Of a stretch of DNA of 64,000 bases, positions 1,676-64,000 are shown one piece after another. Each line of letters starts with the position of its first letter. The first letter of the stretch is position 1. This DNA is from Octopus sinensis. Taxonomy: Eukaryota. The position numbers and the translations under genes are program-made. Location of the stretch: contig NW_021835996.1 in NCBI RefSeq assembly GCF_006345805.1, positions 434,001 through 498,000 on the forward strand, read 5' to 3'. Below the pieces are notes generated by a model that worked only from the letters and a program-made list of their open reading frames with translations, had not been told where the DNA came from and searched no databases.

Positions 1676-2394
1676 TTAAAATGTTACGTCCTTGTAATTT
1701 AATAAAGAAGGCAATAGTCCTTGGATTCTGGCTATTAACTTAGCACAAATCTTTGGAGTAACTTCGTCCATAGATTGTTTAATTAAATCCTCAAATCTCT
1801 GTTTCCGAAATTCTGTTTTTGACAAGTCAGGTTCATTTCCATCTAAGATATTTCCAAGATTTTCAGCCATTTTTCTTTTTACAAAAGCTTTCATTTTAGA
1901 CCATATTTGTTCGATTGGATTTAACATTGGACTGTAAGGTGCAAGTCGAAGTATTTTGTTTTCTGTGAATTCATTTTCTTCAAGTATTTTTTCAATGTCT
2001 GTATGACATGGAGCATTGTCAATTATTAAAACTACTGGACTTAGATAAACTTCATATGCTTTTTTAAAGCATGCTTTAATCCAATCATACGCAGTTTGTT
2101 TATTAAAGGATCCTCTTCGTATTTCAAAGTGTATTACTCCTTTTGTACCGATACAACCGATAACATGAATGTAAGCACCTTTAGATGAAGCTGCACGTGT
2201 ATTACATCGCTGCCCCTTTTTCGACCTCCCTTGTTTCCTTGATATGTGTAAATTAAAGTTGGATTCGTCCATAAAAAGAATCGGAATTTCTATTGCTTGA
2301 TAACCAAGCAGCTTTTCACAAAATCTTTTGCGCTTCTCTTTGTTCTGCATTGAGTTGCTTTTTCAGGTTCGAATCTTATGTTTTTTATGGTATA
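1676..2394 (-). pseudogene. IS630/Tc1-family DDE transposase, C-terminal part (DD35E)
   Basis: Motifs FMDESNFN, IIDNAPCH and LAPYSPMLNPIEQIW, with 35 residues between the second D and the E. YTIKNIRFEPE lies upstream across a 1-nt frameshift. Confidence 0.9.
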
Positions 2395-3490: not shown

Positions 3491-4470
3491 TTGAAGGTTT
3501 TAATGGACCTCATCATGAATGTCGAGGACATTCGCGTTGTTCATTTTAATCAAAATGCAGAAAATAATTTTTTGATTTTTTGGGGGAAGGTTTTAAGGAC
3601 TTCATCATGTAAGTCGAGGACATTGTAGTTGTTCATTTTAACCAAAATGCAGAAAATTTTTTTTAATTTTTTTGGGGGGAAGGTTTTAAGGACTTCATCA
3701 TGTAAGTCGAGGACATTGTAGTTGTTCATTTTAACCAAAATGCAGAAAATTTTTTTTTAATTTTTTTGGGGGGGAAGGTTTTAAGGACTTCATCATGTAA
3801 GTCGAGGACATTGTAGTTGTTCATTTTAACCAAAATGCAGAAAATTTTTTTTAATTTTTTTGGGGGGGAAGGTTTTAAGGACTTCATCATGTAAGTCGAG
3901 GACATTGTAGTTGTTCATTTTAACCAAAATGCAGAAAATTTTTTTTAATTTTTTTGGGGGGAAGGTTTTAAGGACTTCATCATGTAAGTCGAGGACATTG
4001 TAGTTGTTCATTTTAACCAAAATGCAGAAAATTTTTTTTTAATTTTTTTGGGGGGGAAGGTTTTAAGGACTTCATCATGTAAGTCGAGGACATTGTAGTT
4101 GTTCATTTTAACCAAAATGCAGAAAATTTTTTTTTTAATTTTTTTGGGGGGAAGGTTTTAAGGACTTCATCATGTAAGTCGAGGACATTGTAGTTGTTCA
4201 TTTTAACCAAAATGCAGAAAATTTTTTTTTAATTTTTTTGGGGGGAAGGTTTTAAGGACTTCATCATGTAAGTCGAGGACATTGTAGTTGTTCATTTTAA
4301 CCAAAATGCAGAAAATTTTTTTTTAATTTTTTTGGGGGGGAAGGTTTTAAGGACTTCATCATGTAAGTCGAGGACATTGTAGTTGTTCATTTTAACCAAA
4401 ATGCAGAAAATTTTTTTTTAATTTTTTTGGGGGGGAAGGTTTTAAGGACCTCATCATGTAAGTCGAGGAC
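3491..4470. repeat. Minisatellite inside the Helitron: ~10.5 copies of a 92-95-bp unit
   Basis: GTTGTTCATT starts at 3536, 3628, 3721, 3816, 3910, 4003, 4098, 4193, 4287 and 4382. The inner units differ essentially only in T and G run lengths. Confidence 0.95.
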
Positions 4471-4552
4471 ATCGTATTGCCAATTTGAAGTTGGTGTGCA
4501 CACACAGACAGACAGACAGACAGACACACACCATACCATTTTATTATTAAGA

Positions 4553-4822: not shown

Positions 4823-6147
4823 ATCTTACGATCCTCGGTGCCCCCATGGGGCCTTCTGCCCTCGAATGCTCACTCGCTGGAAAAATTTCCCACTTATCCA
4901 AAATGATCGAGAAGCTTAAAGTCATCGAGCCTCATGTGGCTCTTTTCCTTCTCCGAAACCACTTTTCCGTCCTTAAGATCCTTTACACCCTAAGATGTGC
5001 ACCCTGCTTTCAAAGAGGCGACCTTCTTTCCGACCTTGACAATATCCTCAGGCTCGGTACGAGCTCTCTTTGCAATCTGGCTTTCGACGATCCAGGCTGG
5101 ACTCAGGCATCCCTGCCTGTGCGCTGGGGCGGCCTTGGTTTGAGATCCTATTCCAATCTTACCCTCCCCGCATTCCTATCCGTCCATCACGCTTCTCGTA
5201 CTCTCTCAGACATCGTTCTTAGAAACCTCCCCGAACGGAAATTGTCTGAGGTTTACTCTGCTGCCCGTGGTCGGTGGGAGGCTCGGTTTGGTTCGAAGCT
5301 GCCCAATTCTCAATCTGTACAGCGTCAATGGGACGAAATCTCTTGTCAGGCAATTTTCGAAGGCCTCCTTCCTGTCTCCAATCAACACCGTGTCGCTTGC
5401 CTCCGTGCAGGTCGCTGCGAAGGCAGCGGTGTCTGGTTAAAGGCTCTCCCTCTCCCTTCCATCGGGAACCTGGTGGACAAGGAATGCCTAAGAATTGCAA
5501 TCTCCCTCCGTGTCGGGCTGAAAATCTGCCAGACGCACAAATGCCGTTGTGGGGGAACTGTTGACGAGTACGGTTTACACCCCCTCGCTTGCCGTCGGAG
5601 TGCTGGCCGTGTCTCCCGTCACAGTGAACTCAACTCGATCATACAGAGAGCCCTCGCTTCAGCTGGCATCCCGTCAATCCTTGAACCTGTTGGATTGGAT
5701 AGAGGGGATGGCAAACGCCCAGACGGCATGTCCACCTTCCTATACGAGCAGGGGAAATCCCTTATTTGGGATTCTACCTGTTCGGACACGTTCTCGCTGG
5801 GAAATCTCGCTCTGTCCGCCGCCAATTCTGGGCACGCTTCGAGGCAGGCCGAGGAGCGAAAGATTCTAAAGTACGGCCACCTCTCCAACTCGCTGTTCTT
5901 TACTCCAATTGCTGTGGAGTCCTCCGGGATCTTCGGCCCCAAGACACTCCGCTTCCTTCGCTCGCTCGGTCGACGGATTTCAAGGACTAGCCACGATCCA
6001 AGAGAGTATTCTTGGCTCCTGGAACGTCTGTTGATTGCTGTGATCCAAGGGAACGGCTTCGCCATTCGCGAGGCTGGCCGGGTGTCTCGTGAGGCCTTTA
6101 ATTAGCTTAGCTATCTTTTTACTTTTTGCCAATAATATAAACTTCAA
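4823..6147 (+). mobile_element. 5'-truncated CRE-clade non-LTR retrotransposon (post-RT region, zinc knuckle, RLE endonuclease) with ~14-bp TSD
   Basis: Open 419-aa ORF with CRCG..D.YG.H.LAC..R..RH and LEPVGLDRGDGKRPDG..WDSTC.DT...EERKILKY. TSD-like AATAAATGAAT(T)CAA at 4809-4822 and 6148-6162. Confidence 0.9.
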
Positions 6148-6171: not shown

Positions 6172-6366
6172 TGAAAATCCTTGAACTTGGAAATCCCATA
6201 TTGAATTTGGAAAATCCTACTTTGAACTTGGAAATCCCATATTGAATTTGGAAAATCCTACTTTGAACTTGGAAATCCCATATTGAATTTGGAAAATCCC
6301 ACTTTGAACTTGAAAATCCCATATTGAATTTGGAAAATCCCACTTTGAACTTGGAAAGGTATAGAG
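6172..6366. repeat. Right TIR made of ~4.5 copies of the same 41-bp unit, inverted
   Basis: Repeats of GAACTTGGAAATCCCATATTGAATTTGGAAAATCCTACTTT ending in GGAAAGGTATAGAG. Confidence 0.85.
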
Positions 6367-7267: not shown

Positions 7268-10200
7268 TTGTGCGAACTAATTACATTGAAAATACCAACA
7301 TCCCTTGGATGGATATCTGTAGGAGCTATGTACTCCATATCAATGAAGAATTATCTAAATCTTATAGAAGAATTTTTTCAAAACAGTGATAGAGGAATTC
7401 TAATAGGAGACCAAAACACACATCGTACGGTTGTGCTAATACAAATTCAGACGGTCATATATTCCTCCGATTATCGAAAAACTGCGGCTTTAGTGTTTTG
7501 ACCTCACGAGAACCAAACCATTTCTCTTGTTATGGGGAGGATTGTATTGGAGTTTTCCTCGTATCGGCTGATCTTGTTCATCAATGCAGCATACCACCAA
7601 TTGAGATAAACATTGGTAGTGATCACCTACCTCAATCTTTATGTATGCGAACATCATCTACGACAGTGATTCTCAACCGTGGTGCATGTGCACCATTTTT
7701 GGTACATGGAAAATACTCGAATGGTGCATGGAAAAAAAATTGGTACATGGTATTATTTTTTTACTATCAGTAATTAGTACATTACGATGGTTAACCATTA
7801 TCATTTGATATCTATAAATACTCGTGTCAATCACATGTCTGCTGGTAATTCATGTACGCCTCGGATTTATCGTAAAGAATATCTGAAATATTGATTTATC
7901 CCTTCCAATGGAGACAAATCTAGGCCTTTTTGCATAATCTGCAAAATTTCTTTGGCCGATAGTTCAATGAAATTATCAAGATTAATAAACCATTTGAGGA
8001 CTAGACATCCAAATCTAGTCGGATCTTCGCTTGAATATTTTCAAAATATAAAAAAAAATTGATGAACCTACAACTCTTCAAAAGTTAATCACTCATCATG
8101 CTCTTGCGCGAAAAAGTATTCCTTTTAACCTATTTCATAGATGGGTTACTTGCATCCTACAAAATTGCCCATATTGTTGCTAAAAATAATGCTACCCATG
8201 ATTTGGGAACAAATAATTAAAATTTTATTATGTTTTCCAACAACATATCTGTGGAATCAGGATTTAGCGTAATAAACAGAATATTGAACAATGAACGTAA
8301 CAAGCTTGATATTTGCTCGCGAGGAGATGTCAGATTATTTTTAACAGGCTTGGACCCTGATATTCAGGAACTAATTAAAATGCATGAAAACCAAGGCTCT
8401 CATTAAATAGTTAAAAAAAGATTTTAAGTCAATAAAATTAATTAAAAAATTAAATAAGTCTTTGTTTCTTTGGTACACGAAATAAGATGGTTTGGTACAC
8501 TGACGTTTTTTTTGGTACACCAAAAAAAAAGGTTGAGAATCACTGATCTACGATATGCTAAGATCTTTTCATCGGATATGATACGTCTCGGACAATCTGG
8601 TCTGACTTCGAGATGTCAATAAAAATGCATTTGATACCGTATCCAATAGAAAACATCTCCTCGAATATACAAATTGAAAAAATTGATAAAATTCTCAGAG
8701 AAGCTATACTGGATTTTCTTCAAAAATCTTCGGTCAGAAAATACATCATGTCAAATAGTAACAGAAAAACCCTGATAGACGAATCTTTGAGAAAACTTAT
8801 AAAATAAAAGGGAAACCTTGAAAAGAAGCTAAAACGTGCAATGACTCCATAGATCGCATTCGTCTTCGGGATAAGATTCGTATCGTGAAAACAGAGATAA
8901 ATGATGTAGCAAAAAAACATTCAGACTTTGCTTGGAACAGTCAATGCTCGAAACTGAATAAGAAAAATTTTTTGAAGGTTTTCAATAGACTAAGTAATAT
9001 GAAGAATAAAGGAGAAGAGATCCGACTAAAAACAACTAAAGAAATAGCTATTCCGCTCGATGAAGTTCCCTCACATTTGCGAAGACAACTGGCAAAAGTT
9101 CAAGAGGTGGATCCGATCGACATGGTTCCGAAAGAATCTACATGTGAGGCACAGAGAAGTCTGCGAGCTAACTTGAATTATACGGGACCACTGTGCAGAG
9201 GTATAACGTTGGAAGAAACGTATGCCGCTATTATGAGCTGCAAGAACAATGCACCCGACCATGACTACATTCCAATTACTGTATTCAAACATGCTCCAAT
9301 TATTCTCCTAAGATACTTGACCGCACTATACAATGCAAGCTGGAGACTTGGATACGTACCGGACTCTTGGAAAAAGTCAATCGCACGTATGATTCCAAAG
9401 CCTAGCAGAGAACTATCGGCCAATAAGCCTAATATGCTCCGTCTCTAAAATTATAGAACGGATTGTCTTTGCAAGGCTTTCGAACTTCGTAGAGGAATCA
9501 GGTGCACTTACAGCGGAGCAGTGAGGATTCCGACGAAAAAGATCCTGCGGAGATTGCTTCGGAGAAGAAGAAAAAGCATTTTGCTTAGTCTTGCAAACAA
9601 TATAGCTTTTGACAGCGTATGGCACCTGGGCCTCTTAGAAAGTGTCGCCAGAATCAAACCCGGGTCTAGAACGGTCAATTGGCTGAAGAGCTACCTATCC
9701 ATGAGGAGGTCATACATACGATGCGGAAACCGTTTGTCGGGATCTGTCGATCTCAAAAGAGGGGTACCTCAAAGCTCGGTCTTGAGCCCTCTGCTTTTTA
9801 ATATCTACGTTGCTGATATTCCAAAACCGAAAGATCTTACCAGTCGTCTCATGATCTACGCGGACGACATACTACATACTAATGGAGAAAAGACATTTTG
9901 TGGAGGAAATTAAAAGGATACGTGACAAGTGTGGTGCAGATCAAAAGGACTGACACTCGCAAAAGAAAACTGCACCGCCACTTGGATTGCAAAACAGGGA
10001 GTTAAACGAAAACCGCCGAGAAACCTCCATGGGTTTACAGTAACGGAGAATCTGAAATACCTTGGGGTTGAAGTTAAATCCAAGGGTTCTTACTTCAGAT
10101 ACATCGATTCGAGAAGAAGGAAATGCGTTCAAATTCTCAGGAGCATAATTCACTTCCACCTTTGTCCGGAAACTTTTTATATGTTTATAAAACGTGCGTC

Positions 10201-10460
10201 GAACCATTGCTTACCTACGGGTTCGAGGAATGGTACCCTACTGCTGAGAGGGATGGCATTATCGCTAAGCTCGAAAAGACGAGACGATATGCTATCAAAT
10301 TGGCAAATGGACTCCAGCTGGACCAACCCATCCCTCAAGAGATGGAAGACGCGACGGAAACGATTGGAAGTGTTCTTAAGAGTCTTTTCCTTTCGAATCT
10401 TGAACATAAAAAAGATGGAAACAACGGAGAAGAGGCATACGTTGTCTCATTAACTTTCTC
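7268..10460 (+). mobile_element. Decayed APE-RT LINE (I/Jockey-like)
   Basis: Endonuclease remnants (LIGDQNTH, GSDHLP) and RT remnants (WKKSIARMIPKP, AFDSVWH, GVPQSSVLSPLLFNIYVAD, IYADD), with many frameshifts. Interrupted by the hAT at 7664. Confidence 0.8.
7664..8545 (+). mobile_element. Internally deleted hAT (Buster) element with perfect TIRs and 8-bp TSD
   Basis: 15-bp TIR CAGTGATTCTCAACC / GGTTGAGAATCACTG. TSD ATCTACGA at 7656-7663 and 8546-8553. Residual BED-finger and C-terminal dimerisation (ESGFSVIN) coding pieces. Confidence 0.95.
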
Positions 10461-10499
10461 TCTCTTTTTTCGGCTTTTCCGTTTTAATAAAAAAATTCA

Positions 10500-10960
10500 T
10501 TCAATTCAACCCAGTCTTCCCGGGTCGTGCAATCAACCCCTTCTGCAATGGCAAGAACCCTGAATTCCCTACCAAACTGGAACATGTTGGGCTTGATCGT
10601 GAAGACGGAAAAAGCCCAGATGGAGTCACCGTTTTTCCATGGATTCTACAGACACGGACAGATTTCCGGGAATGAATATAGTCAACTCGGCAAACAGTCC
10701 AGGGTCAGCCGCTAAAAAGGCTAAAGATCTTAAAATCTTGAAATACTCTAACCTGTCGGACAACGTGATCTTTTCCCCAATCTCCGTATAAACATCCGGA
10801 GCCATGACCAACAAATCTCTGGAACTCGTTGGGAGAATCAGACAATTGATCTCAAAAAGACGACGAAAGCCTCGGGAGAAGCAATGGCTGGTCCAAAGAA
10901 TCTCCATTGCGATTCTGAAAGGCAACATCTTCACGATCATTAGTAGTTTTAGATCTAACT
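10500..10960 (+). mobile_element. 3' fragment of a CRE-like retrotransposon (RLE domain)
   Basis: Encodes KLEHVGLDREDGKSPDGVTVFPW and EKQWLVQRISIAILKGN. Confidence 0.85.
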
Positions 10961-11039
10961 TAATTTTTTTAATGTAATTTCGGTATATAAAAAAAATTAT
11001 ATCAACTAAAATATAAAAAACGGAAATAACGGAACTGAT

Positions 11040-11460
11040 TAGAAGAAAAGACAGGACCGGGGAACCATGGAAAAAACTAAGAAATTAGGTTTCTCAGTGA
11101 CCCTAAAATATTACAAGAAGGAGAACACCTACTTACTCCGCACTATACAAACTGAGGAAGACCTGGCTTGTCTGCAGGAAACTTGACGTGAGAACTAGAG
11201 TTTGTCTTTACGATGACTGGTGGACTTTATACCTCCCTAAAACTCGTGAACCTGGATAGTAAAAAAGGAATACATAAGGTGAACTATTTCCACAGAGATC
11301 AGCTATCACTAATCCTATTTTCACGAGATCAATCCAAAAGGCCTTCCGGAATTCTCTACAAGAGAACAAGAATCACTCCAATCTTAAAGGAGATTCTGGA
11401 GGCAGATAGAGCCTGTTTGGTCACATTCATAGAATAGACATGGATTCCCCCGAACGAGGC
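11040..11460 (+). mobile_element. 3' fragment of an RTE-like retrotransposon
   Basis: Remnants such as LNYFHR.QL and CLFGHIHRID resemble the RTE copy at 23549. Confidence 0.6.
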
Positions 11461-12041
11461 CCGCTTCCGGAATAGCTAATCTCATGTTAAAGTGACTTAA
11501 ATCTGAATAAATAAACAAATAGGTAGGTAGGGTTTATTGTAAAAAAAACAAGGAAAGTGTTAGATAATTAATAAGATGAAACATTTACCAGATAGCTGTT
11601 GATGACAACCAGACTTTTTTAAAATACAACCTGTAAGTCACCGGGAAGACGTAAGTTCATCATTGCGCTGAATATTTGATCTCCTCACCTGGGTCATTTA
11701 CAGACATGTATTTCTGGATCTCTTATTCCATTGTAGGGATCTCATGATCAGCAATATGATCATTGAGACTAAGTCTAAATACTAATTAAAGAGTGAAACG
11801 GCGAGTATACTCAAACTTTAAGACGATATTCTGGAACTGTATCAGACTTCTAGTCCAAATAGAGGACGTGGGAAGATAACTGATTTATATATAAAGGTTT
11901 TCAGGAGGCAGAGTGGTTTTTCATTAAAAAATGATTCATGATACGGTAGAGCGAAAAATGTGCGTATCCGTTACGGTAATAGATATCTAATATAAATCAG
12001 ATTTCCGCAATGCATCTTGGATAGGATTAAAGTGTGACATA

Positions 12042-15000
12042 ATGAGTGGTAATTTGTACATTCGAAATAAAATTAAGAATCTGAAGATTTGTTTGGAGAA
12101 GGAATTGGAGAGTATAGAGGTGTTTATTTCTAATATAAAACATAGAAATAGAACTCGGTTGCAAGAAATCATCACCAATTGAAAAGAAAGGTGAGTTTAT
12201 GATTAAACATTCATTAAAATAATTTATATAAAATAATTAGAATCAGTACATGACACAAATATTCAAAGAATACCAAATACCATTCAGCTTGGTTGATTAT
12301 TAATAAATAAACAAAATAGGAAGTTTAACTCAAACAGGAGCTAATATTCAACTAATTACCCACGAATCGGGTAAATATAACTATAAATCGTTTAAAGACG
12401 ACGGAAAATTAGAAAATCAACCGAATCTAGAAATTCCATACGACGAGGGTACAAAAAAGTAGCTAAGAATATTAGGAGAGACGGAAAAACAAATGGAAAA
12501 ACAAATAGAAACGTGTGACGAAATAGACGATGAAGAAAAGATGGATGTCAATGTCGTAGGAGATGATATATGTTTTATTTGATATTTTATTTAAGTAAAA
12601 CCCGCATACGAAGAGATATCTAAAGATCATGGAAATAAAGAAGATGGTTCTACTATTTCTGAAATGGAAAAACAGATAGAAACGTGTGACGAATTAGACG
12701 ATGAAGAAAAGATGGATGTCAATGTCGTGGGAGATGATATATGTTTTATTTGATATTTTATTTTAGTAACACCCGCATACCAAGAGATATCTAAAGATCA
12801 TGGAAATAAAGAAGATGGTTCTACTATTTCTGAAATGGAAAAACAGATAGAAACGTGTGACGAATTAGACAATGAAGAAAAGATGGATGTCAATGTCGTG
12901 GGAGATGATATATGTTTTATTTGATATTTTATTTTAGTAACACCCGCATACCAAGAGATATCTAAAGATTATGATAATAAACAAGATGCGTCTACTATTT
13001 CTGAAATGGAAAAACAGATAGAAACGTGTGACGAATTAGACGATGAGGAAAAGATGGATGTCAATGTTTTAGGAGATGATATATGTTTTAATTGATATTT
13101 TATTTAAGTAAAACCGGCATACCAAGAGATATCTAAAGATCATGGAAATAAACAAGATGCTTCTACAATTTCTGAAATGGAAAAACAGATAGAAAAGTGT
13201 GACGAAATAGACGATGAAGAAAAGATGGATGTCAATGTCGTAGGAGATGATATATGTTTTATTTGATATTTTATTTAAGTAAAACCCGCATACGAAGAGA
13301 TATCTAAAGATCATGGAAATAAACAAGATGGTTCTACTATTTCTGAAATGGAAAAACAGATAGAAACGTGTGACGAATTAGACGATGAGGAAAAGATGGA
13401 TGTCAATGTCGTAGGAGATGATATATGTTTTATTTGATATTTTATTTTAGTAACACCCGCATACCAAGAAATATCTAAAGATCATGATAATAAACAAGAT
13501 GCTTCTATTATTTCAGAAATGGAAAAACAAATAGAAACGTGTGACGAATTAGACGATGAGGAAAAGATGGATGTCAATGTTATAGGAGATGATATATGTT
13601 TTAATTGATATTTTATTTAAGTAAAACCGGCATACCAAACGATATCTAAAGATCATGATAATAAACAAGATGGTTCTACTATTTCTGAAATGGAAAAACA
13701 GATAGAAACGTGTGACGAATTAGACGATGAAGAAAAGATGGATGTCAATGTCGTGGGAGATGATATATGTTTTATTTGATATTTTATTTTAGTAACACCC
13801 GCATACCAAGAGATATCTAAAGATAATGATAATAAACAAGATGCTTCTACTATTTCTGAAATGGAAAAACAGATAGAAACGTGTGACGAATTAAACGATG
13901 AGGAAAAGATGGATGTCAATGTTTTAGGAGATGATATATGTTTTAATTGATATTTTATTTAAGTAAAACCGGCATACAGAGAGATATCTAAAGATCATGA
14001 TAATAAACAAGATGCGTCTACTATTTCTGAAATGGAAAAACAGATAGAAACGTGTGACGAAATAGACGATGAAGAAAAGATGGATGTCAATGTCGTAGGA
14101 GATGATATATGTTTTATTTGATATTTTATTTAAGTAAAACCCGCATACCAAGAGATATCTAAAGATAATGATAATAAACAAGATGCTTTTACAATTTCTG
14201 AAATGGAAAAACAGATAGAAACGTGTGACGAAATAGACGATGAAGAAAAGATGGATGTCAATGTCGTAGGAGATGATATATGTTTTATTTGATATTTTAT
14301 TTAAGTAAAACCGGCATACCAAACGATATCTAAAGATCATGAAAATAAACAAGATGCGTTTACAATTTCTGAAATGGAAAAACAGATAGAAACGTGTGAC
14401 GAAATAGACGATGAAGAAAAGATGGATGTCAATGTCGTAGGAGATGATATATGTTTTATTTGATATTTTATTTTAGTAACACCCGCATACCAAGAGATAT
14501 CTAAAGATCATGGAAATAAAGAAGATGGTTCTACTATTTCTGAAATGGAAAAACAGATAGAAACGTGTGACGAATTAGACGATGAAGAAAAGATGGATGT
14601 CAATGTCGTGGGAGATGATATATGTTTTATTTGATATTTTATTTTAGTAACACCCGCATACCAAGAGATATCTAAAGATTATGATAATAAACAAGATGGT
14701 TCTACAATTTCTGAAATGGAAATACAGATAGAAACGTGTGACGAATTAGACGATGAAGAAAAGATGGATGTCAATGTCGTAGGAGATGATATATGTTTTA
14801 TTTGATATTTTATTTAAGTAAAACTCGCATACAAAGAGATATCTAAAGATCATGAAAATAAACAAGATGCTTCTACTATTTCTGAAATGGAAAAACAGAT
14901 AGAAACGTGTGACGAATTAGACGATAAAGAAAAGATGGATGTCAATGTCGTAGGAGATGATAAATGTTTTAATTGATATTTTATTTAAGTAAAACCCGCA

Positions 15001-16572
15001 TACGAAGAGATATCTAAAGATCATGGAAATAAACAAGATGCGTCTACTATTTCTGAAATGGAAAAACATATAGAAACATATGACGAAATAAACGATGAGG
15101 AAAAGATGGATGTCAATGTCGTAGGAGATGATAAATGTTTTAATTGATATTTTATTTTAGTAAAACCCGCATACCATGAGATATCTAAAGATCATGGTAA
15201 TAAACAAGATGCTTTTACTATTTCTGAAATGGAAAAACAGATAGAAACGTGTGACGAATTAGACGATGAGGAAAAGATGGATGTCAATGTTTTAGGAGAT
15301 GATATACGTTTTAATGAGATTTTATTTTAGTAACACGCGCATACCAAGAGATATCTAAAGATAATGATAATAAACATGATGGTTCTACTATTTCTGAAAT
15401 GGAAAAACAGATAGAAACGTGTGACGAAATAGACGATAAAGAAAAGATGGATGTCAATGTCGTAGGAGATGATAAATGTTTTAATTGATATTTTATTTTA
15501 GTAAAACCCGCATATCAAGAGATATCTAAAGATCATGATAATAAACAAGATGCGTTTACTATTTCTGAAATGGAAAAACATATAGAAACATGTGACGAAA
15601 TAGACGATGAAGAAAAGATGGATGATCGAAATGTAAATTAAAATTGTTCTCATTATTTCAGAAAAATTTGTTAACATTTCAACCGGCTAATTTGGATAAA
15701 AACAATATGCCAGACTATGTAGAAATCGGTAGTATTTTATCCCGATAATATTTTTAGATATATCTGACGACACTTGTAGTATGAATGCAGTTCCTGGAAT
15801 ATTTTTAAATTTAGACGACGTTGATCCTATTCTGTCTACGCCTATTACTAAATATGGTATTTAAAAATTTGTCATTTTAGATATCGAAGGAATGACAATG
15901 CAAACAAGTACTTAATTATTTTCACATTATTTTAGTCCCAGATCCAATTCCTCTGGAAACGACTCATGTATTTTCTTTACTAAATTAATTTTAGCCGAAA
16001 TTTTATCGTATTCTCGTCGTTGGAAGCAAAAATTCAGGAAAATCGTCTTTACTTAAGCTCATGATTAAATCCAAAGATTCGATAGAAAATTATAACGTCT
16101 TTTTAATTTACAAGTCCTAGTTTGATTATATCACATGCCACTGTCGGAATACGGAATTTGGTGAAATTAATTTTAGTGCCATCGAAATTTTAGGTTGCTT
16201 TTTTCACTATGTTAAGGCGATCCGAATTACTATATACCTAATACATCCTTCTATAAAAATGCTGATGGCTACATTATATGCACAGATTCTATCTCGTTTG
16301 AATCCCTTGAAAAGGTCAGGTCATGGAAAGAAAGAGTGGACGAGATGTTGTATCACCCAGACTCAACACCAAAGACAAGTTTATTGGTCATAACAAAAGT
16401 TAGTGTCGTGTGCTTTTTTTAGTCTGACCTAATAGATATCGGACAAATAGAAACTAAACAATTGAATGATTTCTGCGACCAAGAAAAGATTACGTGTAGC
16501 TGGATATCCACATCGGCTGCGAAGAATTTTAATGTGACGAATGCATTTTATCGGATCATTTCTGGAGTATAA
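12042..16572 (+). CDS. Large acidic-repeat protein with a C-terminal atypical Rab-like small GTPase domain (true start may lie further upstream)
   Basis: A continuous spliced frame runs through about 30 GT-AG introns, mostly 23-29 nt. The C-terminus reads ILVVGSKNSGKSSLL (G1), AIEILGD (G3), FYKNADGYII..SFESLEKVRSWKERVD, LVITKSD (G4), TSAAK (G5), then GV-stop. Confidence 0.75.
12493..15623 (+). repeat. Tandem array of ~18 x 171-bp units, each a 147-nt exon plus a 24-nt intron (49-aa repeat)
   Basis: ATGGAT (mostly ATGGATGTC) recurs every 171 bp from 12541 to 15618, with one 170-bp unit. Each full unit carries GTTTTAWTTGATATTTTATTTWAG; one copy is 23 nt. Confidence 0.95.
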
Positions 16573-17214
16573 CCAAGTCATTATTTTAGCTGTCAACAAA
16601 GTCAGGGCCAAATCCTGAATACGCCGAAAGTGTTCTTTCTGAAACTCCAAAGCAAACTCAGAATAAATGTTGTTAAATCTTGAATTCTTTATTCTCTAAT
16701 TACGATAATAAATAATCGTCGTTTGCTTTTTTAAATTAAACCATCTCGATTCGTGGCCAGTGCCTGTGAGTGTCGAATTCTGAGACCCGACCTCCTAAAC
16801 AAAGCTGATTGTTTTTCCACCCATGGAACCAGACGTCTAACTGCGAATGGAAGGAATTGGTACTTCTCCACAAGTGAATCTTTTTACATTCGACAGTTGT
16901 GGCGATTAATCCCTAACCATAATTGTACAGTATAACCTCCATTTGGGGCAGACCTATGACTTGGGGAACCTCCATTTTTGAAGAAACGTCTATTTTTGGG
17001 GTAGTTTGAAAAGGATATAATTTTTATGCGGTAATTTCCAAATTTAGAAATTACAGGAACCTCTAAGAGGGGCATATACATATTTGCTATTAAAATTAAC
17101 TCGTGTAATTTTTGTATTCTTTTGTTATGGCTCGTAAGCTTAGTCTTGAGTTAAAGATCAAATTGTAAAGGAATTAAGTGAAAATAAGCATCTTACTGAA
17201 CGAGATATTGAAGA

Positions 17215-18050
17215 TTAGACTTCCATTAATTTCTGACGATTAATCGAGTCAAAAGGTCTTGACATATCAATGCCAAGAATGTATGTCGCATTTTTGAACC
17301 TTTGAATGGTGGAACAATGCCATCTATGGGTCCACACGATGTCAGAAGTCGATCTTCCTTCCCGAAATCCGCTGTGAAAAGCGGATATAAATAGTTCGGT
17401 GCGAGGTTTTATTCTTTCTAGCGTAATGATTGCAAGAACTTTCCGTATGCTATTCATAAGAATTACTGGCCTTAGATTCTCCACTTTTCCCTTAGCTTTG
17501 TTTGGTTTTTGGACAGGGACCAGTATCCTTCGTCCAAGGGGTAAATGGTTGTTCGTTTTAAACATTCCGTCGAAGAGGTCCGCAATCAGGACATTTAGCT
17601 TTTCACTTCCATATTTGAGTAGCTCTGGTCCTAGTCCGTCTGGTCTCGGCTTTTATTGTTTTTGAGCTTAGCACATGCTCTTTGCACTTCTGCAGGAGTT
17701 ATTTCCAACTCCAATTTCCTCGGATGCCCGGTATATCCACCAATTCCTTTGCTGTTGGATCTAAACAGTTTCTCGAAGTGTCCGGCGATTAGTTGTGCTA
17801 ATTCTGCGGAATCTGCAATTCGTCTTCCATTTTTGTCATTTATGATTAGTGGTTGTCTGTGTTTACGTCCTCGTAATAATCTGATCGCCTCATAATACCT
17901 TCCATTGTCTTTCAAGGCTTCAATGGCCTTGATCCGTGTCTCAGCCTTATTCCTTGACATATAGGACACGCACTTCTTGATCCTCTTCTTAATATTCGAT
18001 CTTTCCCGACCAAGTTTTTCTTTGATGTGCTTGTCCTCCGCATTTAAAAA
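17215..18050 (-). mobile_element. RTE-like retrotransposon RT fragment
   Basis: Encodes LVPVQKPNK...NLRPVILMNSIRKVLA...GFREGRSTSDIVWTHRW...GIDMSRPFDSI. Confidence 0.85.
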
Positions 18051-23548: not shown

Positions 23549-24733
23549 ATGATTTCCACTGGCAGGTCCACTGCTGATGTGATCTGGACTCACAGATGGA
23601 CAGCTGCCACATGCCAAAAATATAAACATTGCACTGAAATACTCGGCATCGATATGTCCAGAGCATTCGACTCTGTTCACAGAACTAAACTTGTGGAAAT
23701 ACTTATGACCTTCTTAAATCATGACGACATCAGAATAATCCTAATGCTTCTTCAGAACACTCAATTAGCAACCAAACTTGGTAAAAATGTGTCAAACTAT
23801 TTCTACACATCACGGGGCATACCACAAGGCGATTCGCTGTCCCCAGTTCTCTTTATCGTCTACCTAGAGGCAGCACTCAGAGACTTTCGGCCTCTTGTGG
23901 ACAACACTAAATACAACGAAATAATATATGCTGATGATGTCGACTTCGTATCTGATGATGCTGAAACCCTTCGATTTATTATCGAAACATTACCAGATAT
24001 TTTTTCCAAATGGTTTCTAACAATCAACCACAATAAAACTGAACATACGAAATTTATTCGATCTGAACGAACTCATGATGAGCCCTGGAGAAGACAAAAA
24101 AAAGTCGGATCTCTCTTAGGGGACTCTGAAGACATTATGTACAGAAAAATACTATCAATTGCCACATACAATAAGTTTATGAACATCTGGCGCCTAAAGA
24201 AGCTAAATTCAAAGACAAAACTTAAAATATACAACACATTTGTTGTCCCAGTCCTAATGTACAATGGATCGACGTGGGGAATCAGTAAGACCGATATGAA
24301 CAATTTGGACCGATTTCATCGGAACCAACTGAGAAGAGTGATAAACATGCAATTCTCAAGGAAAATAGCAAATTCCACCCTATACAAAAGATGCAATTCG
24401 AGACCGATCTCTATGGACATCCTGGAGTCCAGATGGCGACTCTTTGGACACATATTAAGACTTGACAGCCTCACTCCGCCGAATATCGCGATGGAAAACT
24501 ACTTTGCCCATTCCAAAGGAGACTTCCGTGGAAGACCCAGGGTCACTCTGGCTACCACGCTAAATGAAGATCTAGCTGGAATTAATAAAAAACTGAAAAA
24601 TGGCGATGATCTCGACTCACTCAGGACGATCGCAACTGACCGGAGAGCCTGGAGACGCATGACCGGGAGAATTTCAATGGTGGCACAAGGAAAGCTTAAT
24701 TAACTTATGACTTTTCCGAAAGTGCTTTATAAT
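23549..24733 (+). mobile_element. 5'-truncated RTE-like retrotransposon with an open RT ORF and (TAA)n tail
   Basis: 384-aa ORF with GIDMSRAFDSV, GIPQGDSLSPVLF, YADD, RWRLFGHILR and GRPRVTL. The tail is TAATAATAATAA. Confidence 0.9.
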
Positions 24734-26439: not shown

Positions 26440-27300
26440 TCACCGAGTATTTGAAACAAACAAGGGCACCCTCCAAGGAGACGCCTTATCCCCGGTCTTA
26501 TTCATCGTATATCTGGAGGCGACCCTACGAAATGTCAGGAATAATATCCCCAGACATATTACAGAAGTCACCTTTGCAGATGACATAGATTTCACGGCAA
26601 CAGAGCGCCAAATAGAAGGTGCTATGGACAAATTGGCAAACACTTTTGAAAAATCATTCCTAAAAATTAACACTGAGAAAACAGAATACAATATAGTGAG
26701 GCGATGTGACGAACAACACGAGGAAAAATGGAGGCATACAAAGAAACTTGGCACTCTCTTAGGAGATACAGAAGACATGATACGAAGAAAATCACTTGCA
26801 ACTTTCGCGCTCAAGAGATTAAACAACATATGGTTGAGAGGCAAACAAATTTTTGCGTCTTTAAAAATCAAACTTTACAATATGTTCGTAAAACCAGTCC
26901 TACTGTACAACTCCTCCTCTTGGACACTCACAGTGCAGGAAATGGAAAATCTCAATTCCTTCCACAGAATGCAGCTGAAATACATCCTAGGAATCTTTTG
27001 GTCAAAACGAATTTCAAACAAACATCTCTACTCAAGGTACAATGCACACCCGTTGGACGAAGAAATAAGAAGCAATAGATGGGGCTTATTCGGTCACATC
27101 CTAAGAATGGACAGGAATACTCCTGCAAATCTCGCAATGGAACACCACTACGCCCCAAACCCGGGAACAAACTTTCGAGGAAGACCACGAATCACTCTAC
27201 CAACTCTTCTGCACCAGGACCTAACTTTGATTGGAAAAAGACTGAAATCAGCAGACGATCTTGAGCACTTGAGAGAACTATCGAGGAACCGCCTGAGCAT
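26440..27300 (+). mobile_element. RTE-like retrotransposon, RT/C-terminal fragment
   Basis: GTLQGDALSPVLF, FADD, WRHTKKLGTLLGD, RWGLFGHILRM and RGRPRITL. Confidence 0.9.
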
Positions 27301-27924
27301 ATTTCAGGTAGAAAGTCTCGATTACCTAGAGAACAAAAACTTTGTTATTCTCGACTCTAGCATACTTCTCATATTTTTTTCGCTCAGCTTGTTCAGATGG
27401 GGCTGCAGGATCTTCGATTGATAATTTTATATTCTGATTTTAATTTGAGTGCGGAAAGTGTTAAAGGGCTGTATGGAAAGCTTCCTAGTTCCGAAGATAT
27501 GCATTTCCTTCGATGTATTTTGTCCGTACTTATCGCTTTATTCTTTTAGCTTCAGATGCATTAGTAGGCTTTCTTCGGTACAAAAGCAATGGACAAATTC
27601 GAGATTAGATATGAATCGGACATCGACGCCTTAATAACGTTAAAATTGCAAAAACTAGTTGCAACCTAATAATATAATGATATAGGAACTTTGGGATTCT
27701 ATCCTTTCTTGTAATTTCGGATATGAAATTTTTTGCAAACATTAACTTCATTCATTCAGCATTAAAAAAGTTTTAGTTGTGTTAATTGGCAATGTGCATG
27801 ACAAGAATGACTCAGCAAAGTCTAGGCAACCCCAACAACCCTTGGGCCAATCAATCCTCTCATTAAGACTAACTATATTCATCATGAATAGAAATCAGAT
27901 ATTAAGAGCAACAAGATTAATAAA

Positions 27925-30267
27925 TTAATTGTCACAACAGAGAACAAGGGCTACTCTTGAAGGAATATAGACCTAATTTTCCAATCAATCATGAGCATAC
28001 AAAAACACAGTTGGGCTGACTATCAAAAATTTCATTACTAGTGAAAATGGGCAATGATATGTCCACTCTTCCATATCCTCCGTATTTAGAGTCGTCGGAG
28101 CTGAGAATGATTCGATAGCTTTAAATAATGTAATGAAATACCTTCCGGCATGAGGGACTCCGATCTTGTAATCGGTGTAACTCTGATGCGGATGGAAATT
28201 AAATATAAACACCAATCCAGCACGATTACAGACAAAAATCTTGTCATCCTCGTGATGGCGACTCACATAGGCCTAAAACAATAACCAAGACGATCCAACA
28301 GGCCCGGAAGCTAATAACTGAAAATTCTCGTCAACAGCATTTTTATCACGTTCAAATGCATTTAAGAATCGGTACCGCAAATACTCGCTGTCCACCAAAT
28401 TGAACTGTCTTCTTGCATAGTGAAAGCTGTTATTATTTCCAAAACGAGGGAAATCTAGCCACTCTGGGTGACCAAACTCATTTCCTGAAACATTAGTGAC
28501 TACTATTGTCATACCAATAAAATTGAGATATCCCTCTCCGCCCACAGCGTGAGTAATAAGACGAATTAGTTTATGAAGAGCCATTCCACGGTCAATGATA
28601 ATCGAGGGAGACTGGTTTGTGGACATGTTGAAATACATTTCCTTATCCATCAGCCAGAAAGCAATCGATTTATCACCCACAATGGCTTGGTCGTGGCACT
28701 CTGCATAAGATATGCACTTTTCCCCAAAACGTCGATTTGTGAGAGTATGAAAGAAATGTCCCATGCTCCAGTCCTCATCGCGGATTTCCTTCAGCATCCT
28801 TATCCACATGTCCGGAATAGCCATCGCCAGTCTGTAGTCAAACCCAATTCCTCCCTCTTCGACAGGACGACACAACGTTGGCATCCCAGAAACGTCCTGA
28901 CAAATACAGAAAAATAGGAAAACCTCAGCAATCGTGACTATAAAGTCAGGATATAACTTGTGGAGAATAGAGTTGGCCATCATCAGGTACAGAATTGACT
29001 GAAGATCGCAGTTATCTCCAAAGTACTCGTCATAGTGACCACTGAATCCGTGGCCTATTCCGTGGGAATGGTACAGCATTGAGGTTATCCCGTCAAAACG
29101 GAATCCGTCGAACCGAAATTCTTCCACCCAAAACCGCAGATTCGACAAAAGAAACCGAAGTACTTCCAAACTGGCAATTAATAGTAAAAAACACTTTTGA
29201 TAATCGAACAACCGACTGTCCCATAATCCGTGATATCCACGGGGCCCTCTGTTGAAAAAACAAGTTTCAGTTCCATCAAAAAGATTGATTCCGTCGGCGA
29301 CATTCCGCGATGCGTGACTGTGAACGAGGTCTAAGTAAACTTGTATTCCCATTTCGTGAGCACAGTCGACCAATTCCCTCAGCTCGTCGGGAGTTCCAAA
29401 TCGACTGAAGCAGTTAAAAGACAAATAAGAAAGAACCCAACCTTGAAGAGGCAAAAAAGCTAGTGATTTGATACCCAAAACTGGCATAATAGGCATGCTC
29501 CATAACGGCCATAATCTGAATGGCGTTGAAACCTAATTGGATACCAAAAGAGTAAAAACCCAGATTCTTGATTCGAGGAAGCACATCAATCCTGAAATGA
29601 TTGTACGTCGACACATGTTTCTCAGGAGAAGCGATCCCAATGTGGCATTCGTAGATACGTAAGGAGTTTGGTCGAGGTGGGTGTGAGTGCTTCATGACGT
29701 ACGGAGAGGGTGGGTTCCAAATGAGGTTTTGGTAGATCACTTCATTAGGTTTGCAGGCGACATATCGCGCCCATGGGTCAATCCTATCAAAATACGTTCC
29801 ATCAGAGGAGACCAGTCCCAACTATAAAATTACTGCCCAAGATAACTTTGATGTTGGAAAGGTGTTTTGTCAAGTTTTCGTCGCCAGTGATTTTAAGGTG
29901 GAAATGTCCAACACCTTTTTTGGTAAATGGATGAGAACGTCTGTTCCAATTATCTATTTCACTGGTAATCGACACGTAACTGAAGTCTCCGTGCAAGTAT
30001 ACTTCGCTTGCACCAGGTGCCCAAATTCGAGCCTCCAGTGTGCCATTTTCTCGAACGTTGATTCCATAGTCTTTATATGACAGAGTAAATCTGTTCAATC
30101 CGCCGGGATGCTTCTTTAGATTCCTGAATAGCTCGATATAGCAAATGTATCTAAAGGTGTGCCTTCGTTTAATACCTCCGTCTTATTACTTCTTTGTATT
30201 TCCTGAGATATCCATCAATTTCAAAGAGATTCTCAATCTGAGGAGGCAACAGGTCTGGCAAGTCCAT
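27925..30267 (-). CDS. GBE1: 1,4-alpha-glucan branching enzyme (GH13)
   Basis: MDLPDL...[60 protein letters not shown]|[26 protein letters not shown] and [11 protein letters not shown]-stop. Confidence 0.97.
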
Positions 30268-41573: not shown

Positions 41574-44500
41574 ATGTCAATTACGCTTTTCAAAATCGAA
41601 CATGCACAAATAAAACACACAGCAAAGGACCTACAAAAATCCTTTCTGGTGCCAGTTTGTCGTCTTTTCGGCCACACATTATGTGGTTCTCTACAAATAA
41701 ACAATCAATTAATAGGAAGTAGTGTGTGCTGTCACCTGCATGGGCTATTTCCGTATTTTTATGTCCGCGCCCCCAACGAAGACTGCACAAAAGCCGATTT
41801 TTTAAACAAACTGAAATTAGAGATTGATAAATGTCTTAGTACTGGACAACCAAGGAGGTTCGTTCACAAGATCGACATAGAGGACGCTTAGTATATAATA
41901 ATTAAATATATATAGTTCAATTTATGGTTATCATTCAAAAAGTTGTAAATTTTTAAAAATATCTTTTTTATCTCCCGCATCAATTCCAATGTACTATGTA
42001 TATTTATTGATATTAGAGCAGCTAGAGAATTGTTGGAAGGGAATGTTTTAGGAACACCAATGCAGCCCTTTGAGTCACATATCCCCTTCCATCTTCAGGT
42101 GACATACTCCTCATAATCAATAGGTCTGCATTGATCTTAACATAAGTGGAATGGCTTCATTTGAATTCAGTTCTTTTTCTGGTAGAATCGGTTTAGATTG
42201 GATTTTGTTATTTTAGGAAACATTTCTCGACATTCCTGTCAGTTGGTTGACTGTTTTTGTCATAAATTTCGTATAAAGTTTGTTAAAATTACAAAAATCA
42301 CAAAAATAGTAAAACAGGCAATGTAGATAATAATTTGACAACATGTGATATTGAAATTGACGTGAATTGTCGCGATATCATTAAAAATGATACATGTAAT
42401 GATTATTTTTGATTTTTTTATATTAAGAACATTTTATATTGTTGTTAGATCACGAATCCGCACTCGACAAAATGTGTTTTCGTTTAAAGAACGATTTTCC
42501 TGATCAAGATCTTCTCAACTCTTCAATGCCAGAACAATCTGGTAATTAATTAGAATAAACTATTTCAGAAAGGTCTCATGCGAGGGCTGATGATCACTTT
42601 GTTACAAAATTGAGGGATTTTGTCTTAGAAAACCAATCGGCTTCACGAGATCTATTTTCCCAGAATTATAGCTGTTTAATCTCATTAATTACACTCAGTA
42701 ACATCCTCCGACTTTTTGCAGGCAGCAAAGATTTCAGATATGTGCAACGAAATTCAGCCTAATAATTATGACGAAGAAATAATCAGAGAGGTTGAACTAT
42801 CTCAGGAATTCAACTATTCGTTGGCCGATTTGTCAGAAACACAAAAATTCTATAAAAAAGATTGCATATCAACAAATACTGTCTATATTCCCAACATATA
42901 CAACCTAAAAAATAGCTACAAGTAATTATATCCCAATATAATAGATTGTCGGGTCACAAGCAACTCAGTTCTCTCAGAAAATGTCAAATGGTATCTATAA
43001 TGCATGTTTACAACTCCCTAAGATTCGTTTTGTACCCGAAAAGTCTCTAAGCTTCACTCATCTCGAAGATTCTAATATAAACTCGTTTTTCAGTGCAATT
43101 GATAATACAAGAGGAGTGGTTAATCATATAAACGACGATGACGTAATACCATCAGTTGCAGTATTTACTCATAAATCTAAAATAGGATTCTCCCTTCAGT
43201 ATTTTAAACTTGGAAGTATTTTGTGATAGTAGGAATGGACTTTGTCCCGATCCTTGTCAGGATTCGATAAGATTTGTCGTTTGCTGTCTCCAAACTCGAT
43301 CGTTGGTCTTGATCTGGGAAACTTTTGTCCTCCAGGATGAACGTTTGGTGGAAAAAAGTCGATTTGGATTGGAAATATGTCCGGTTGTCGTGTATTCCGA
43401 AGTTGATTTGATAGAAAAGGTGATTGAATATATAATTCGGTTGATGTTGGTGGTGGTTATATGTTAATTAGACACGACCCTGATTTATTAATTGGGTTTG
43501 AAACTGAAAAATCGTCCTGGGGATATTTAATTCAGAGGGGACAGATATTGGGGATTTATTTAGCAGGTCGAATTGGTAGAATTCGAGAACTTCAGTTAAA
43601 AAATCAAGGAAATGAGTACTCAAACTGCAATGAACTATCAGGAGAGGCTATTAGTGGTAGAATTTTACTAAATTTGTGGCGTATTATCAAACATGAGGTT
43701 AGTTAGCTGAGTTACTAGTTTAGGTTACACTTATTAACTATTCCTTTGAAGAGGTAGCAAGGAAGGTTTTAAAAATAAATGTACCGGCTTATTCACAAAA
43801 AACATTATTTTCGCTTTATTGTTCTGCATCAAGAGACAGGTAAACCACTAAAGTGTTTACTAAGTATAAATTTATTTGTAATGTCTCTTCTTCGCCAATA
43901 ATTAAATTGAATATATATTTATTGAATTGAATATATATTAATATATATTAATTCATTAAAATTAAATTTTAAGAGTTTCTGTGATTGAATATTTTCAAAA
44001 AAGATGTAAATATTTGTTTGAGATTATTGAGAAATTGAATGTACTTAATAAAGCGGTGGAATTTGCTAGAATATATGGAATTGAGTTTTACCACGTTTTC
44101 TCTCGAGGATCACAGTATCGAGTGGAGTCAATGTTACTGAGGGTAGCAAAGACACGGAAATTTATTTGCATGTCTCCCAATAGTCAACAAAGGGCTAATT
44201 CTGCTAAGCCACAACATATTCCTCTTGTCCTTGAGCCGATTCCTGCTTTTTACAAAGACCCGATTGTGGTACTTGATTTTCAGTCATTGTACCCTTCTAT
44301 TATGATTGCTTACAACTACTGTTATTCAACCTGTCTTGGTAAAGTTGAAGATATTATTTCTGGGAAACCTTTCACGTTTGGGTGTGGGTTGTTGAGTCAT
44401 TGTGTTTCTGAGATATCTGATGTGTTGGAGACTATTACAGTGTCGCCCAGTGGAACGGCCTTCGTGAGTCAGTCTGTGAGGAAAAGTATACTTGCAGAGT

Positions 44501-46404: not shown

Positions 46405-46735
46405 GATATGGAGGGTCCTTAGATTTTGTAATGAATTGCGTAAAATATTATGGAATTTGAGGCAGTCCCTAGATGTGAGGATATAGGGTACTTTAGATTT
46501 TGTAATAGATTGCGTGATATATTATGCAATTTAAGGGGTTCTATAAATGTTAGGATGGGGGTACTTGAAATTTTTTAATGAATTACGTAATATATTATGT
46601 AATTTTGGGCGGTCGCTAGACGTGAAGATATGTGCATACTTGAGATTTTTTAATGAATTGCGTAAAATATTATGGAATTTGAGGCATTCCCTAGATGTGA
46701 GGATATAGGGTACTTGAGATTTTGTAATGAATTTT
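46405..46735 (-). repeat. Diverged inverted block of the ~75-bp satellite found at 60445-64000
   Basis: The reverse complement reads AAATTGCATAATATATCACGCAATCTATTACAAAATCTAAAGTACCCTATATCCTCACATCTAGGG, matching the satellite monomer. Confidence 0.9.
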
Positions 46736-63400: not shown

Positions 63401-64000
63401 TTACATAATCTAAATTGCATAACATTTTACGTAATTTATTACATAATCTCAAGTACCTTCATTTCCTCACATATATGGACCTCATCAAATTGCATATTAT
63501 ATTAGGTAATTCATTACATAATCTCATGTAACTCCATATGCTTACATCTAGCGACCTCCCCAAATTGCATAATATATTACGTAATTTATTACATAATCTC
63601 AAATAGCCCCATATGCTCACATCTAGATACCTCTCCATATGCATAATATATTACGTAATTCATTACATCATCTCAAGTATGTCCATATAATCACATCTAG
63701 GGTTGTCCCAAAATTGCATAATATATTATGTAATTTATTACATAATCTCAAGTACCCCCATATCCTTACATCTAGAGACCTTTCAATAATGCATAATATA
63801 TTACGTAATTCATTACATCATCTCAACTATGTCCATTTAATCACATTTAGGGATGTCCTTAAATTGCATAATATATTAGGTATTTCATTTTATAATCTCA
63901 AGTACCTTTAATCTAGCGACCTCCCAAATTGAATAATATATAACGTAATTTATTACATAATCTCAAGTACCTCCATATGGTTACATCTAGCGACCTCCCC
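60445..64000. repeat. Satellite array of ~75-bp monomers with a ~514-bp 7-mer higher-order repeat (continues past the window end)
   Basis: Monomer TTGCATAATATATTACGTAATTYATTACATAATCTCAAGTAC...CACATCTAG. Monomer starts at 60531, 60606, 60671, 60745, 60820, 60895, 60970, 61045 and 61120. Confidence 0.95.
61138..62401 (-). mobile_element. Internally deleted hAT (Buster/ZBED5-like) element inserted in the satellite
   Basis: 13-bp TIR CAGAGGTTTCCAA / TTGGAAACCTCTG. TSD TATTAGGT at 61130-61137 and 62402-62409. ORF remnants RKYFPSYLLLGF..KPLCLLC and LLPFATSYLCETGFSAL..KSKYR. Confidence 0.95.

Follow-up and report, generated by a model that had tools for sequence, protein, structure and literature searches.

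The stretch of DNA analyzed here (hereafter the window; 64,000 nt) is deposited as Octopus sinensis and corresponds to VCDQ01002078.1:434001-498000 (GCA_006345805.1; 519,584 bp), with 100% identity over 21.4 kb. We focus on a tandem array on its forward strand (12491-15624), in which each 171-bp unit is composed of a 147-nt exon, in phase 1 at both ends, and a mini-intron; this anatomy was read from Tandem Repeats Finder (TRF), a table of the units, and the open spliced frame. Exons of a Rab-like GTPase domain follow on the same strand. We consider it likely that the array supplies the middle part of the coding sequence of a single unannotated dicyemid gene, in which exon+intron units encode an acidic arm joined to the Rab domain. 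The full model of this gene has 33 exons and 32 introns and encodes 1270 amino acids (aa). Its exon borders were curated by hand and checked against Rab homology. A naive search for the longest spliced open reading frame (ORF), in which any GT..AG segment of 15-70 nt was allowed, returned many equivalent paths and could not discriminate among them. The anatomy, the open frame, the Rab homology, the size class of the introns, and the mosaic nature of the units were observed here, and we infer from the sequence that the gene model is spliced and expressed, where its 5′ end lies, and what its cellular role may be.

TRF reported one array with a period of 171, 18.3 copies, 93% matches, and 0% indels at TRF resolution, and the motif GTTTTAWTTGATATTTTATTTWAG had 17 exact matches, beginning at 12572, at a constant spacing of 171 bp. 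An initial annotation of this DNA had counted about 18 near-identical 171-bp units, a count that both results bear out. The first of the 18 mini-introns (GTTTTATTTGATATTTTATTTAAG) lies at 12572-12595, the next 15 copies recur every 171 bp through 15137-15160, and the final copy is at 15478-15501; these 17 copies are 24 nt long. The remaining mini-intron, at 15308-15330, is a 23-nt variant (GTTTTAATGAGATTTTATTTTAG) that holds the sole indel of the array, and the motif scan placed it within the intron where the initial annotation had seen it. All 18 mini-introns have GT..AG ends. Their base composition (T 63%, A 25%, G 13%, C 0%) marks a sharp switch from that of the array exons (A 43%, T 23%, G 21%, C 12%). 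The internal exons are uniform, 17 of 17 being exactly 147 nt long with phase 1 at both ends, and exon accounts for 86% of the 171-bp unit. The computed consensus repeat peptide is EKQIETCDELDDEEKMDVNVVGDDILKPAYQEISKDHDNKQDASTISEM, in agreement with the peptide given earlier, and the predicted spliced junction between array exons joins GATGATATAT to TAAMACC (that is, to TAAAACC or TAACACC). The 23-nt mini-intron should be spliceable, because putative 23-nt introns (16194-16216 and 16567-16589) sit in the same gene model.

Read without splicing, the frame of the array contained 32 stops in 1025 codons. By inspection of the sequence, every 24-nt segment contributes a TGA, the ...TTTAAG variants contribute a TAA in addition, and the 23-nt copy contributes TAG/TAA. 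Once the 18 segments were removed, the frame was open: none of its 882 codons is a stop, against 16-136 stops in the other five frames. The earlier claim that intron removal leaves stop-free 147-nt exons held in these counts, as did, for the 24-nt segments, the claim of an in-frame TGA in every unspliced unit. Removal of any segment that covers the in-frame stops and whose length is a multiple of three nucleotides (3n) likewise opens the frame. Because the open frame alone would fit such other deletions, the intron borders were set by the GT..AG ends and the length class. Coding on the minus strand was rejected, as that strand has no open frame and the segment reads CT..AC there; a 142-aa minus-strand ORF (13924-14352) is the antisense of acidic codons and is broken in other units. 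Unlike a non-coding satellite, which would show neither a kept frame nor a link to flanking exons, the array has an open frame that is continuous in phase with the Rab exons.

Elsewhere in the window, neither the 171-bp unit nor the unique parts of the gene recurred, an Rfam scan of 11000-17500 returned no RNA family, and a scan of metagenome contigs gave no match to the array junction in spliced or unspliced form. Exactly at the 5′ edge of the array, a 12-nt micro-duplication (GGAAAAACAAAT, 2.4 copies) at 12483-12511 encodes EKQMEKQ. It may be the footprint of slippage that started or extended the array.

Flanking exons and the Rab-like domain

Downstream of the array, the last repeat-derived exon (15502-15632) is followed by four unique linker exons (15662-15728, 15758-15856, 15881-15907, and 15936-15967), which are open only with their introns removed. 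The linker introns (15633-15661, 15729-15757, 15857-15880, 15908-15935, and 15968-15994) are 24-29 nt long and run from GT to TTTYAG. Five exons with Pfam and PDB homology then encode the Rab domain (15995-16096, 16121-16193, 16217-16398, 16423-16566, and 16590-16676), separated by introns at 16097-16120, 16194-16216, 16399-16422, and 16567-16589. The model ends in ...TQNKCC at a TAA stop codon (16674-16676), and an AATAAA hexamer 31 nt past the stop (16707-16712) is, by its position, a candidate polyadenylation signal. Nine GT..AG segments (23-29 nt, most ending in TTTYAG) must be removed for the frame to stay open downstream of the array, and a strict mini-intron motif was strongly clustered at 15502-15994 relative to the rest of the window. 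All of these features lie on the plus strand, as do those upstream of the array. On either side of the Rab gene, at 8885-10563 (+) and 17215-17969 (-), are reverse-transcriptase-like ORFs that read from the sequence as transposon remnants.

On the 5′ side, a unique exon (12320-12448), a 27-nt intron (12449-12475), and the exon that includes the array start (12476-12571) form a continuous open frame. Further upstream we modeled, with low confidence, four tentative exons (12042-12048, 12078-12119, 12146-12190, and 12241-12291) that lead back to an ATG at 12042. The four putative introns that go with them are in phase 1 (12049-12077, 29 nt; 12120-12145, 26 nt; 12191-12240, 50 nt; 12292-12319, 28 nt). 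They have GT..AG ends and are AT-rich, but their 3′ ends are A-rich instead of T-rich. The earlier claim that the array frame joins unique spliced exons on both sides therefore stood downstream, into the Rab domain, and upstream for one exon (12320-12448), and is tentative beyond that. Even if the modeled 5′ exons are wrong, the repeat would be translatable, because the array frame has its first in-frame ATG at 12493. The first 23 introns of the model, including the four tentative 5′ introns and all 18 array introns, are in phase 1, and the phases downstream are mixed. Because these introns are all in phase 1, any subset of the internal exons in 12042-15632 could be skipped or duplicated without a frameshift.

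The C-terminal 195 residues matched the Pfam Ras family (PF00071; E = 2.5e-15; score of 56.9 bits, above the gathering threshold of 21.6) over profile positions 1-158 of 162. The best solved structures were those of Rab32 (4cz2, E = 6e-10), Rab7L1/Rab29 (5.5e-09), and Rab38, followed by Rab11 and Rab1, which come within ~1.5 orders of magnitude of these top PDB matches. The domain appears to be a divergent Rab32/38/29-like GTPase, with the tentative subfamily assignment taken from the PDB comparison. The alignment to the Rab structure is unbroken over the four intron positions inside the domain, and because the homology runs across these sites we take the 23-24-nt introns to be real in this gene. 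Among the nucleotide-binding motifs, the G1 P-loop is kept (GSKNSGKS aligned to GELGVGKT of Rab32), the G4 motif reads TKSD aligned to NKCD, and the G5 motif reads TSAAK aligned to TSAK, with one extra residue. In switch II, EILGD aligned to DIAGQ of Rab32, with both the Asp and the catalytic Gln replaced, and switch I is without the conserved Thr. The replacement of the Asp and the Gln of DxxGQ suggests that GTP hydrolysis would be impaired. The C-terminus (...TQNKCC) carries a double-Cys (CC) prenylation motif.

The likeness to Rab32, Rab38, and Rab29 lies in the best-scoring structures and in the Ile of switch II (EILG here, DIAGQ in the subfamily), whereas EILGD, the missing switch I Thr, and the small score margin over Rab11 and Rab1 set the domain apart. 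A long N-terminal extension before a C-terminal Rab domain and a prenylation motif is also known from the large Rab GTPases Rab44, Rab45/RASEF, and Rab46/CRACR2A (PMC8303950), but the extension described here is a tandem acidic disordered repeat and the core is nearest to Rab32/38/29. Neither the EF-hand nor the coiled-coil regions that define Rab44/45/46 were found, as the N-terminus and first repeat had no match to a Pfam family at E <= 0.001. A stretch of three repeats gave sub-threshold Pfam matches only.

Searches of protein collections agree with an unannotated gene. Neither the C-terminal 274 aa nor a condensed model of 633 aa had a match in a collection of 5.8 billion proteins, and for this reason the gene seems to be unannotated. 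The 34-aa exon with the P-loop had two uninformative matches in a representative library of 1.84 billion proteins. The initial annotation had warned that a repeat masker would hide this gene, which agrees with the absence of its exons from the 5.8-billion collection of predicted proteins.

The Rab protein might be thought to start at or after the array end, for example at ...EEKMDDRN (~15617) or at a later in-frame Met, with the array itself being non-coding upstream sequence (promoter, 5′ untranslated region, or satellite). The exons 5′ of the array are without independent support, and conventional Rabs are ~200 aa long, both as this alternative would have it; however, non-coding DNA would have no reason to hold 882 codons open in the Rab frame or to retain 18 pairs of GT and AG, and an 80-aa linker with five well-formed introns separates the array from the GTPase core. 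Several in-frame ATGs do occur in and past the last unit, but in-frame ATGs occur in each unit, such that internal starts would still yield repeat protein. We regard a purely non-coding upstream array as very unlikely.

With the array read as coding sequence of the Rab gene, its repeat region is 902 aa long and has 289 Asp+Glu against 94 Lys+Arg, an isoelectric point of 4.05, and a net charge of -195. The earlier proposal that the expansion added about 880 strongly acidic residues and 18 introns matches these values closely, at about 900 residues. An AlphaFold model of one unit, made with a 16-unit alignment, was mostly coil with one short helix (predicted local distance difference test score of 62; predicted template modeling score of 0.13), and the repeat looks disordered on this prediction. 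The spliced mRNA would encode a ~1270-aa protein composed of a short unique N-terminus, ~18 acidic repeats of 49 aa, the 80-aa linker, and the Rab domain. Geranylgeranylation of the CC motif would anchor this product to a membrane, giving a membrane-anchored and probably GTPase-deficient Rab that bears a long polyanionic disordered arm. Changes in copy number or exon skipping would shift the length of the arm in 49-aa steps with the frame kept, and the protein may have its length tuned in this way by the skipping of exons. A link of the product with the endocytic feeding of dicyemids is speculation. Such a protein, in which a disordered acidic repeat precedes a Rab32-like core whose switch II is degenerate, would represent a new Rab domain architecture.

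Source genome of the scaffold

A glycogen branching enzyme gene on the minus strand (27937-29821) was informative about the origin of the scaffold. Its best match was catalogued as "Octopus sinensis 1,4-alpha-glucan-branching enzyme-like" and is encoded on VCDQ01002078.1 itself, and the enzyme encoded in the window is only ~68% identical to that of Octopus bimaculoides. The gene has introns of 24, 27, 27, 30, 27, and 37 nt at places where homologues show no insertion, and the catalogued "Octopus sinensis" protein (451 aa) reads three 3n mini-introns as coding sequence. The public annotation thus mishandles the mini-introns and probably mislabels the species. The window has a GC content of ~36% (mean of the profile) and contains reverse-transcriptase and DDE-transposase sequences.

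In GC and repeat content the window matches Dicyema japonicum, a kidney parasite collected from O. sinensis. The introns of this parasite are extremely short, its GC content is 36.7%, and 49% of its genome is repeats rich in long interspersed nuclear elements (LINEs) (PMC6736024). Of 51 metazoan genomes surveyed, only those of D. japonicum and of myxobolid myxozoans had introns <30 bp (PMC13644364). Ultra-short introns occur in both the array gene and the branching enzyme gene: those of the array are 23-24 nt long, and homology supports nine in the Rab part (23-29 nt) and six in the branching enzyme gene (24-37 nt). The scaffold is probably dicyemid DNA within an octopus assembly, from D. japonicum or a close relative. 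A myxozoan origin, which would bring similar intron sizes, was rejected in favor of a dicyemid, because it was an octopus sample that yielded the scaffold, and octopus kidneys are the habitat of dicyemids, D. japonicum in O. sinensis among them. Because the scaffold is read as dicyemid, a 24-nt intron is the norm here and not an oddity.

The introns described for D. japonicum and the myxobolids resemble those of the array and of the rest of the gene in their GT..AG ends, their length of 22-27 nt, their reduced splice signals, and the A residues upstream of the AG; however, what is described there is a genome-wide length distribution and not the tandem amplification of a mini-intron together with its exon (PMC13644364). 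If the assignment to a dicyemid is right, parasite DNA makes up at least one 520-kb scaffold of a public octopus assembly, and at least one protein catalogued under octopus belongs to a dicyemid and retains intron sequence.

Variation among the units and origin of the array

Pairwise differences among the units ranged from 2 to 21 of 171 positions, with the 3′-most units (16 and 17) being the most divergent. We found no clean higher-order period, and identity was slightly raised at a lag of 10-11 units. In the four-gamete test, all four combinations were present in 83 of 120 pairs of common sites, which shows the units to be mosaics. This reshuffling of common variants among units indicates concerted evolution by repeated unequal exchange or gene conversion, and it lends weight to the earlier statement that whole exon+intron units had expanded and been homogenized. 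Unequal exchange or replication slippage would have given rise to the array by amplifying one exon+intron unit in tandem, and the amplified copies would have kept exchanging sequence.

The same mosaic bears on whether the array, its copy number, or the 23-nt intron might be an artefact of assembly or consensus calling. Assemblies are in general prone to collapse or expand tandem repeats, but artefactual duplication would not yield units that differ at 2-21 positions in a structured mosaic, and the period is exact over 3.1 kb. The 23-nt variant could plausibly be a long-read consensus error, being one T lost from a TT pair, but the same copy also has a T-to-G substitution beside the deletion. 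An artefact is extremely unlikely on this evidence.

We also evaluated selection between units. Among them, 41 distinct exonic variants were found. Not one created a stop (simulated P = 0.045), and 12 were synonymous where 7.5 would be expected (P = 0.038); the per-site ratio of nonsynonymous to synonymous variants was ~0.5. Each of these signals is real but modest. The initial annotation had suggested a comparison of nonsynonymous and synonymous change between units with intron divergence; the synonymous excess went in the direction of coding constraint, whereas the Fisher contrasts were only marginal (P = 0.086 for nonsynonymous vs synonymous). Intron diversity among units was 0.048, which does not exceed that of the exon, and the difference from exon diversity had no statistical significance. 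Relative to synonymous sites the intron was less variable, with 4 of 72 possible changes seen in the intron and 12 of 77 at synonymous sites (P = 0.06). The sole indel of the array is intronic, where ~14% of random indels would be expected to fall (24/171 bp). Overall, the repeat is under relaxed constraint at most, as is typical of disordered low-complexity regions and also compatible with a young array.

Several points weigh against the array being the coding center of a working dicyemid gene. The 5′ exons were built by hand to hold the frame open back to an ATG and have no homology support, and the searchable collections yielded nothing homologous to the repeat, the linker, or the N-terminus. 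The degenerate switch I and switch II motifs could mean a pseudo-GTPase or decay, and the identity of the organism rests on circumstantial evidence. The between-unit selection signals are individually weak (P about 0.04-0.09), and the diversity at codon positions 1, 2, and 3 is nearly equal (0.060, 0.064, and 0.079); for these two reasons, a young and neutrally evolving array stays compatible with the data.

The expansion might accordingly be young and effectively neutral, or part of a decaying gene, with a coding look inherited from the founding exon+intron unit and no need to be translated or functional. The similar diversity of the three codon positions would suit this explanation. The chance probability of the absence of stops is 0.045 and not far lower, and the contrast of nonsynonymous with synonymous variants is not significant by Fisher test, but the absence of stops, the synonymous excess, and the intronic position of the sole indel all agree in direction. 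The Rab domain lacks the Gln of switch II and the Thr of switch I, but its P-loop and C-terminal CC motif are kept; and while the homologue search was without match, the complete 1270-codon model is intact over 32 introns, its unique Rab part included. We hold a neutral or decaying array to be distinctly unlikely, and continue to read it as coding sequence of the Rab gene.

A more far-reaching joint reading of the data is unlikely but would carry consequences of its own. In it, the 24-nt introns would be constrained beyond the nearby synonymous sites, with almost every base functional, and the product would be a GTPase-dead Rab32-like protein, anchored by geranylgeranyl, with a polyanionic 900-aa arm whose length is changed through copy number or exon skipping; for this product a role in the endocytic nutrient uptake of dicyemids is conceivable. 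If the constraint on the introns were true, the gene would provide a natural allelic series for the splicing of minimal introns, the 23-nt variant included, and a clear instance of intron gain by tandem duplication, with 18 of ~32 introns of one gene gained in this way.

The architecture of tandem exon+intron units is already known, and the array is a compact variant of it. It shares with such modules symmetrical phase-1 exons, a continuous frame, exchange between units, and introns as homogeneous as the exons. In the polymorphic mucins of Schistosoma mansoni (SmPoMuc), a 27-bp exon lies in a ~1-kb unit that is repeated up to about 20 times, with the intron part >94% identical (PMC2576457). 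As in the array, whole exon and intron are repeated, the units are highly homogenized, the host of the gene is a parasite, and the repeat region is hard to assemble and annotate; the number of protein repeats in SmPoMuc is variable. The SmPoMuc unit is, however, mostly intron, compared with 171 bp and 86% exon here, and SmPoMuc is a family of secreted glycosylated mucins with transcript evidence, compared with a single cytosolic Rab-type protein known from sequence alone.

Spider flagelliform (Flag) silk is a second case, in which exon+intron modules are iterated and the introns are more homogenized than the exons, according to the passage in which Hayashi & Lewis 2000 is cited by PMC2576457. 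The array shares with Flag silk its exon+intron modules, homogenized by concerted evolution, and introns that are at least as homogeneous (0.048 vs 0.060-0.079 here), although the gap between intron and exon diversity is without statistical significance in the array. Flag units are reportedly kilobases long, and their product is said to be a structural secreted fiber protein, which are further differences from the array. The new elements are the small scale (171 bp per unit, of which 86% is exon, with an intron of 24 nt), the lineage that hosts the array, and its pairing with a Rab32-like core. If transcripts confirm it, the array would be, to our knowledge, the most compact exon+intron tandem module, the described cases being of kilobase size and mostly intron.

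As a coding array, this locus would illustrate that a satellite-sized repeat can be entirely genic where introns are ultra-short, and it would be a concrete case of intron multiplication by tandem duplication. Such genes would be deleted or garbled by repeat masking and by gene finders that require introns of at least ~30 nt. Its 18 natural near-replicates of a 24-nt intron could also serve the study of minimal splicing signals.

Other elements of the window

A 75-bp satellite family occupies 60472-61134 and 62439-63999 (the right end of the window), with a smaller block at 46412-46733. The 74-bp consensus of the block at 46.4 kb resembles, by eye, the reverse complement of the 75-bp unit. In one frame, the 75-bp satellite contains a 156-aa ORF of 25-aa repeats (60745-61215).

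Two arrays of a 41-bp (21+20) repeat, at 1531-1622 and 6181-6357, lie ~4.6 kb apart and are apparently reverse complements of each other. They bracket an ORF for a DDE_3 transposase, a 95-bp tandem array of 10.4 copies (97% identical), and a 419-aa ORF, and the ORFs and arrays between them are located at 1676-2350 (-), 3493-4476, and 4846-6105 (+). The segment 1531-6357 looks like a composite DNA transposon with terminal inverted repeats built of repeats. An exact-product look-up of three transposon ORFs gave no match.

Besides the two reverse-transcriptase-like fragments that flank the Rab gene (8885-10563 and 17215-17969), three more were found at 23549-24703 (+), 26624-27421 (+), and 53402-53803 (+). 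The fragment at 23549-24703, the only one tested, matched Pfam RVT_1. These fragments look like non-LTR (long terminal repeat) retrotransposons, which fits the LINE-rich genome of D. japonicum.

Two further genes on the plus strand are split by short introns. Exon-sized ORFs of a family-B DNA polymerase gene lie at 43981-45781, and those of a TCP-1/CCT chaperonin gene at 51621-52801; the one ORF tested from each matched PF00136 (43981-44502) and PF00118 (51621-52016), respectively.

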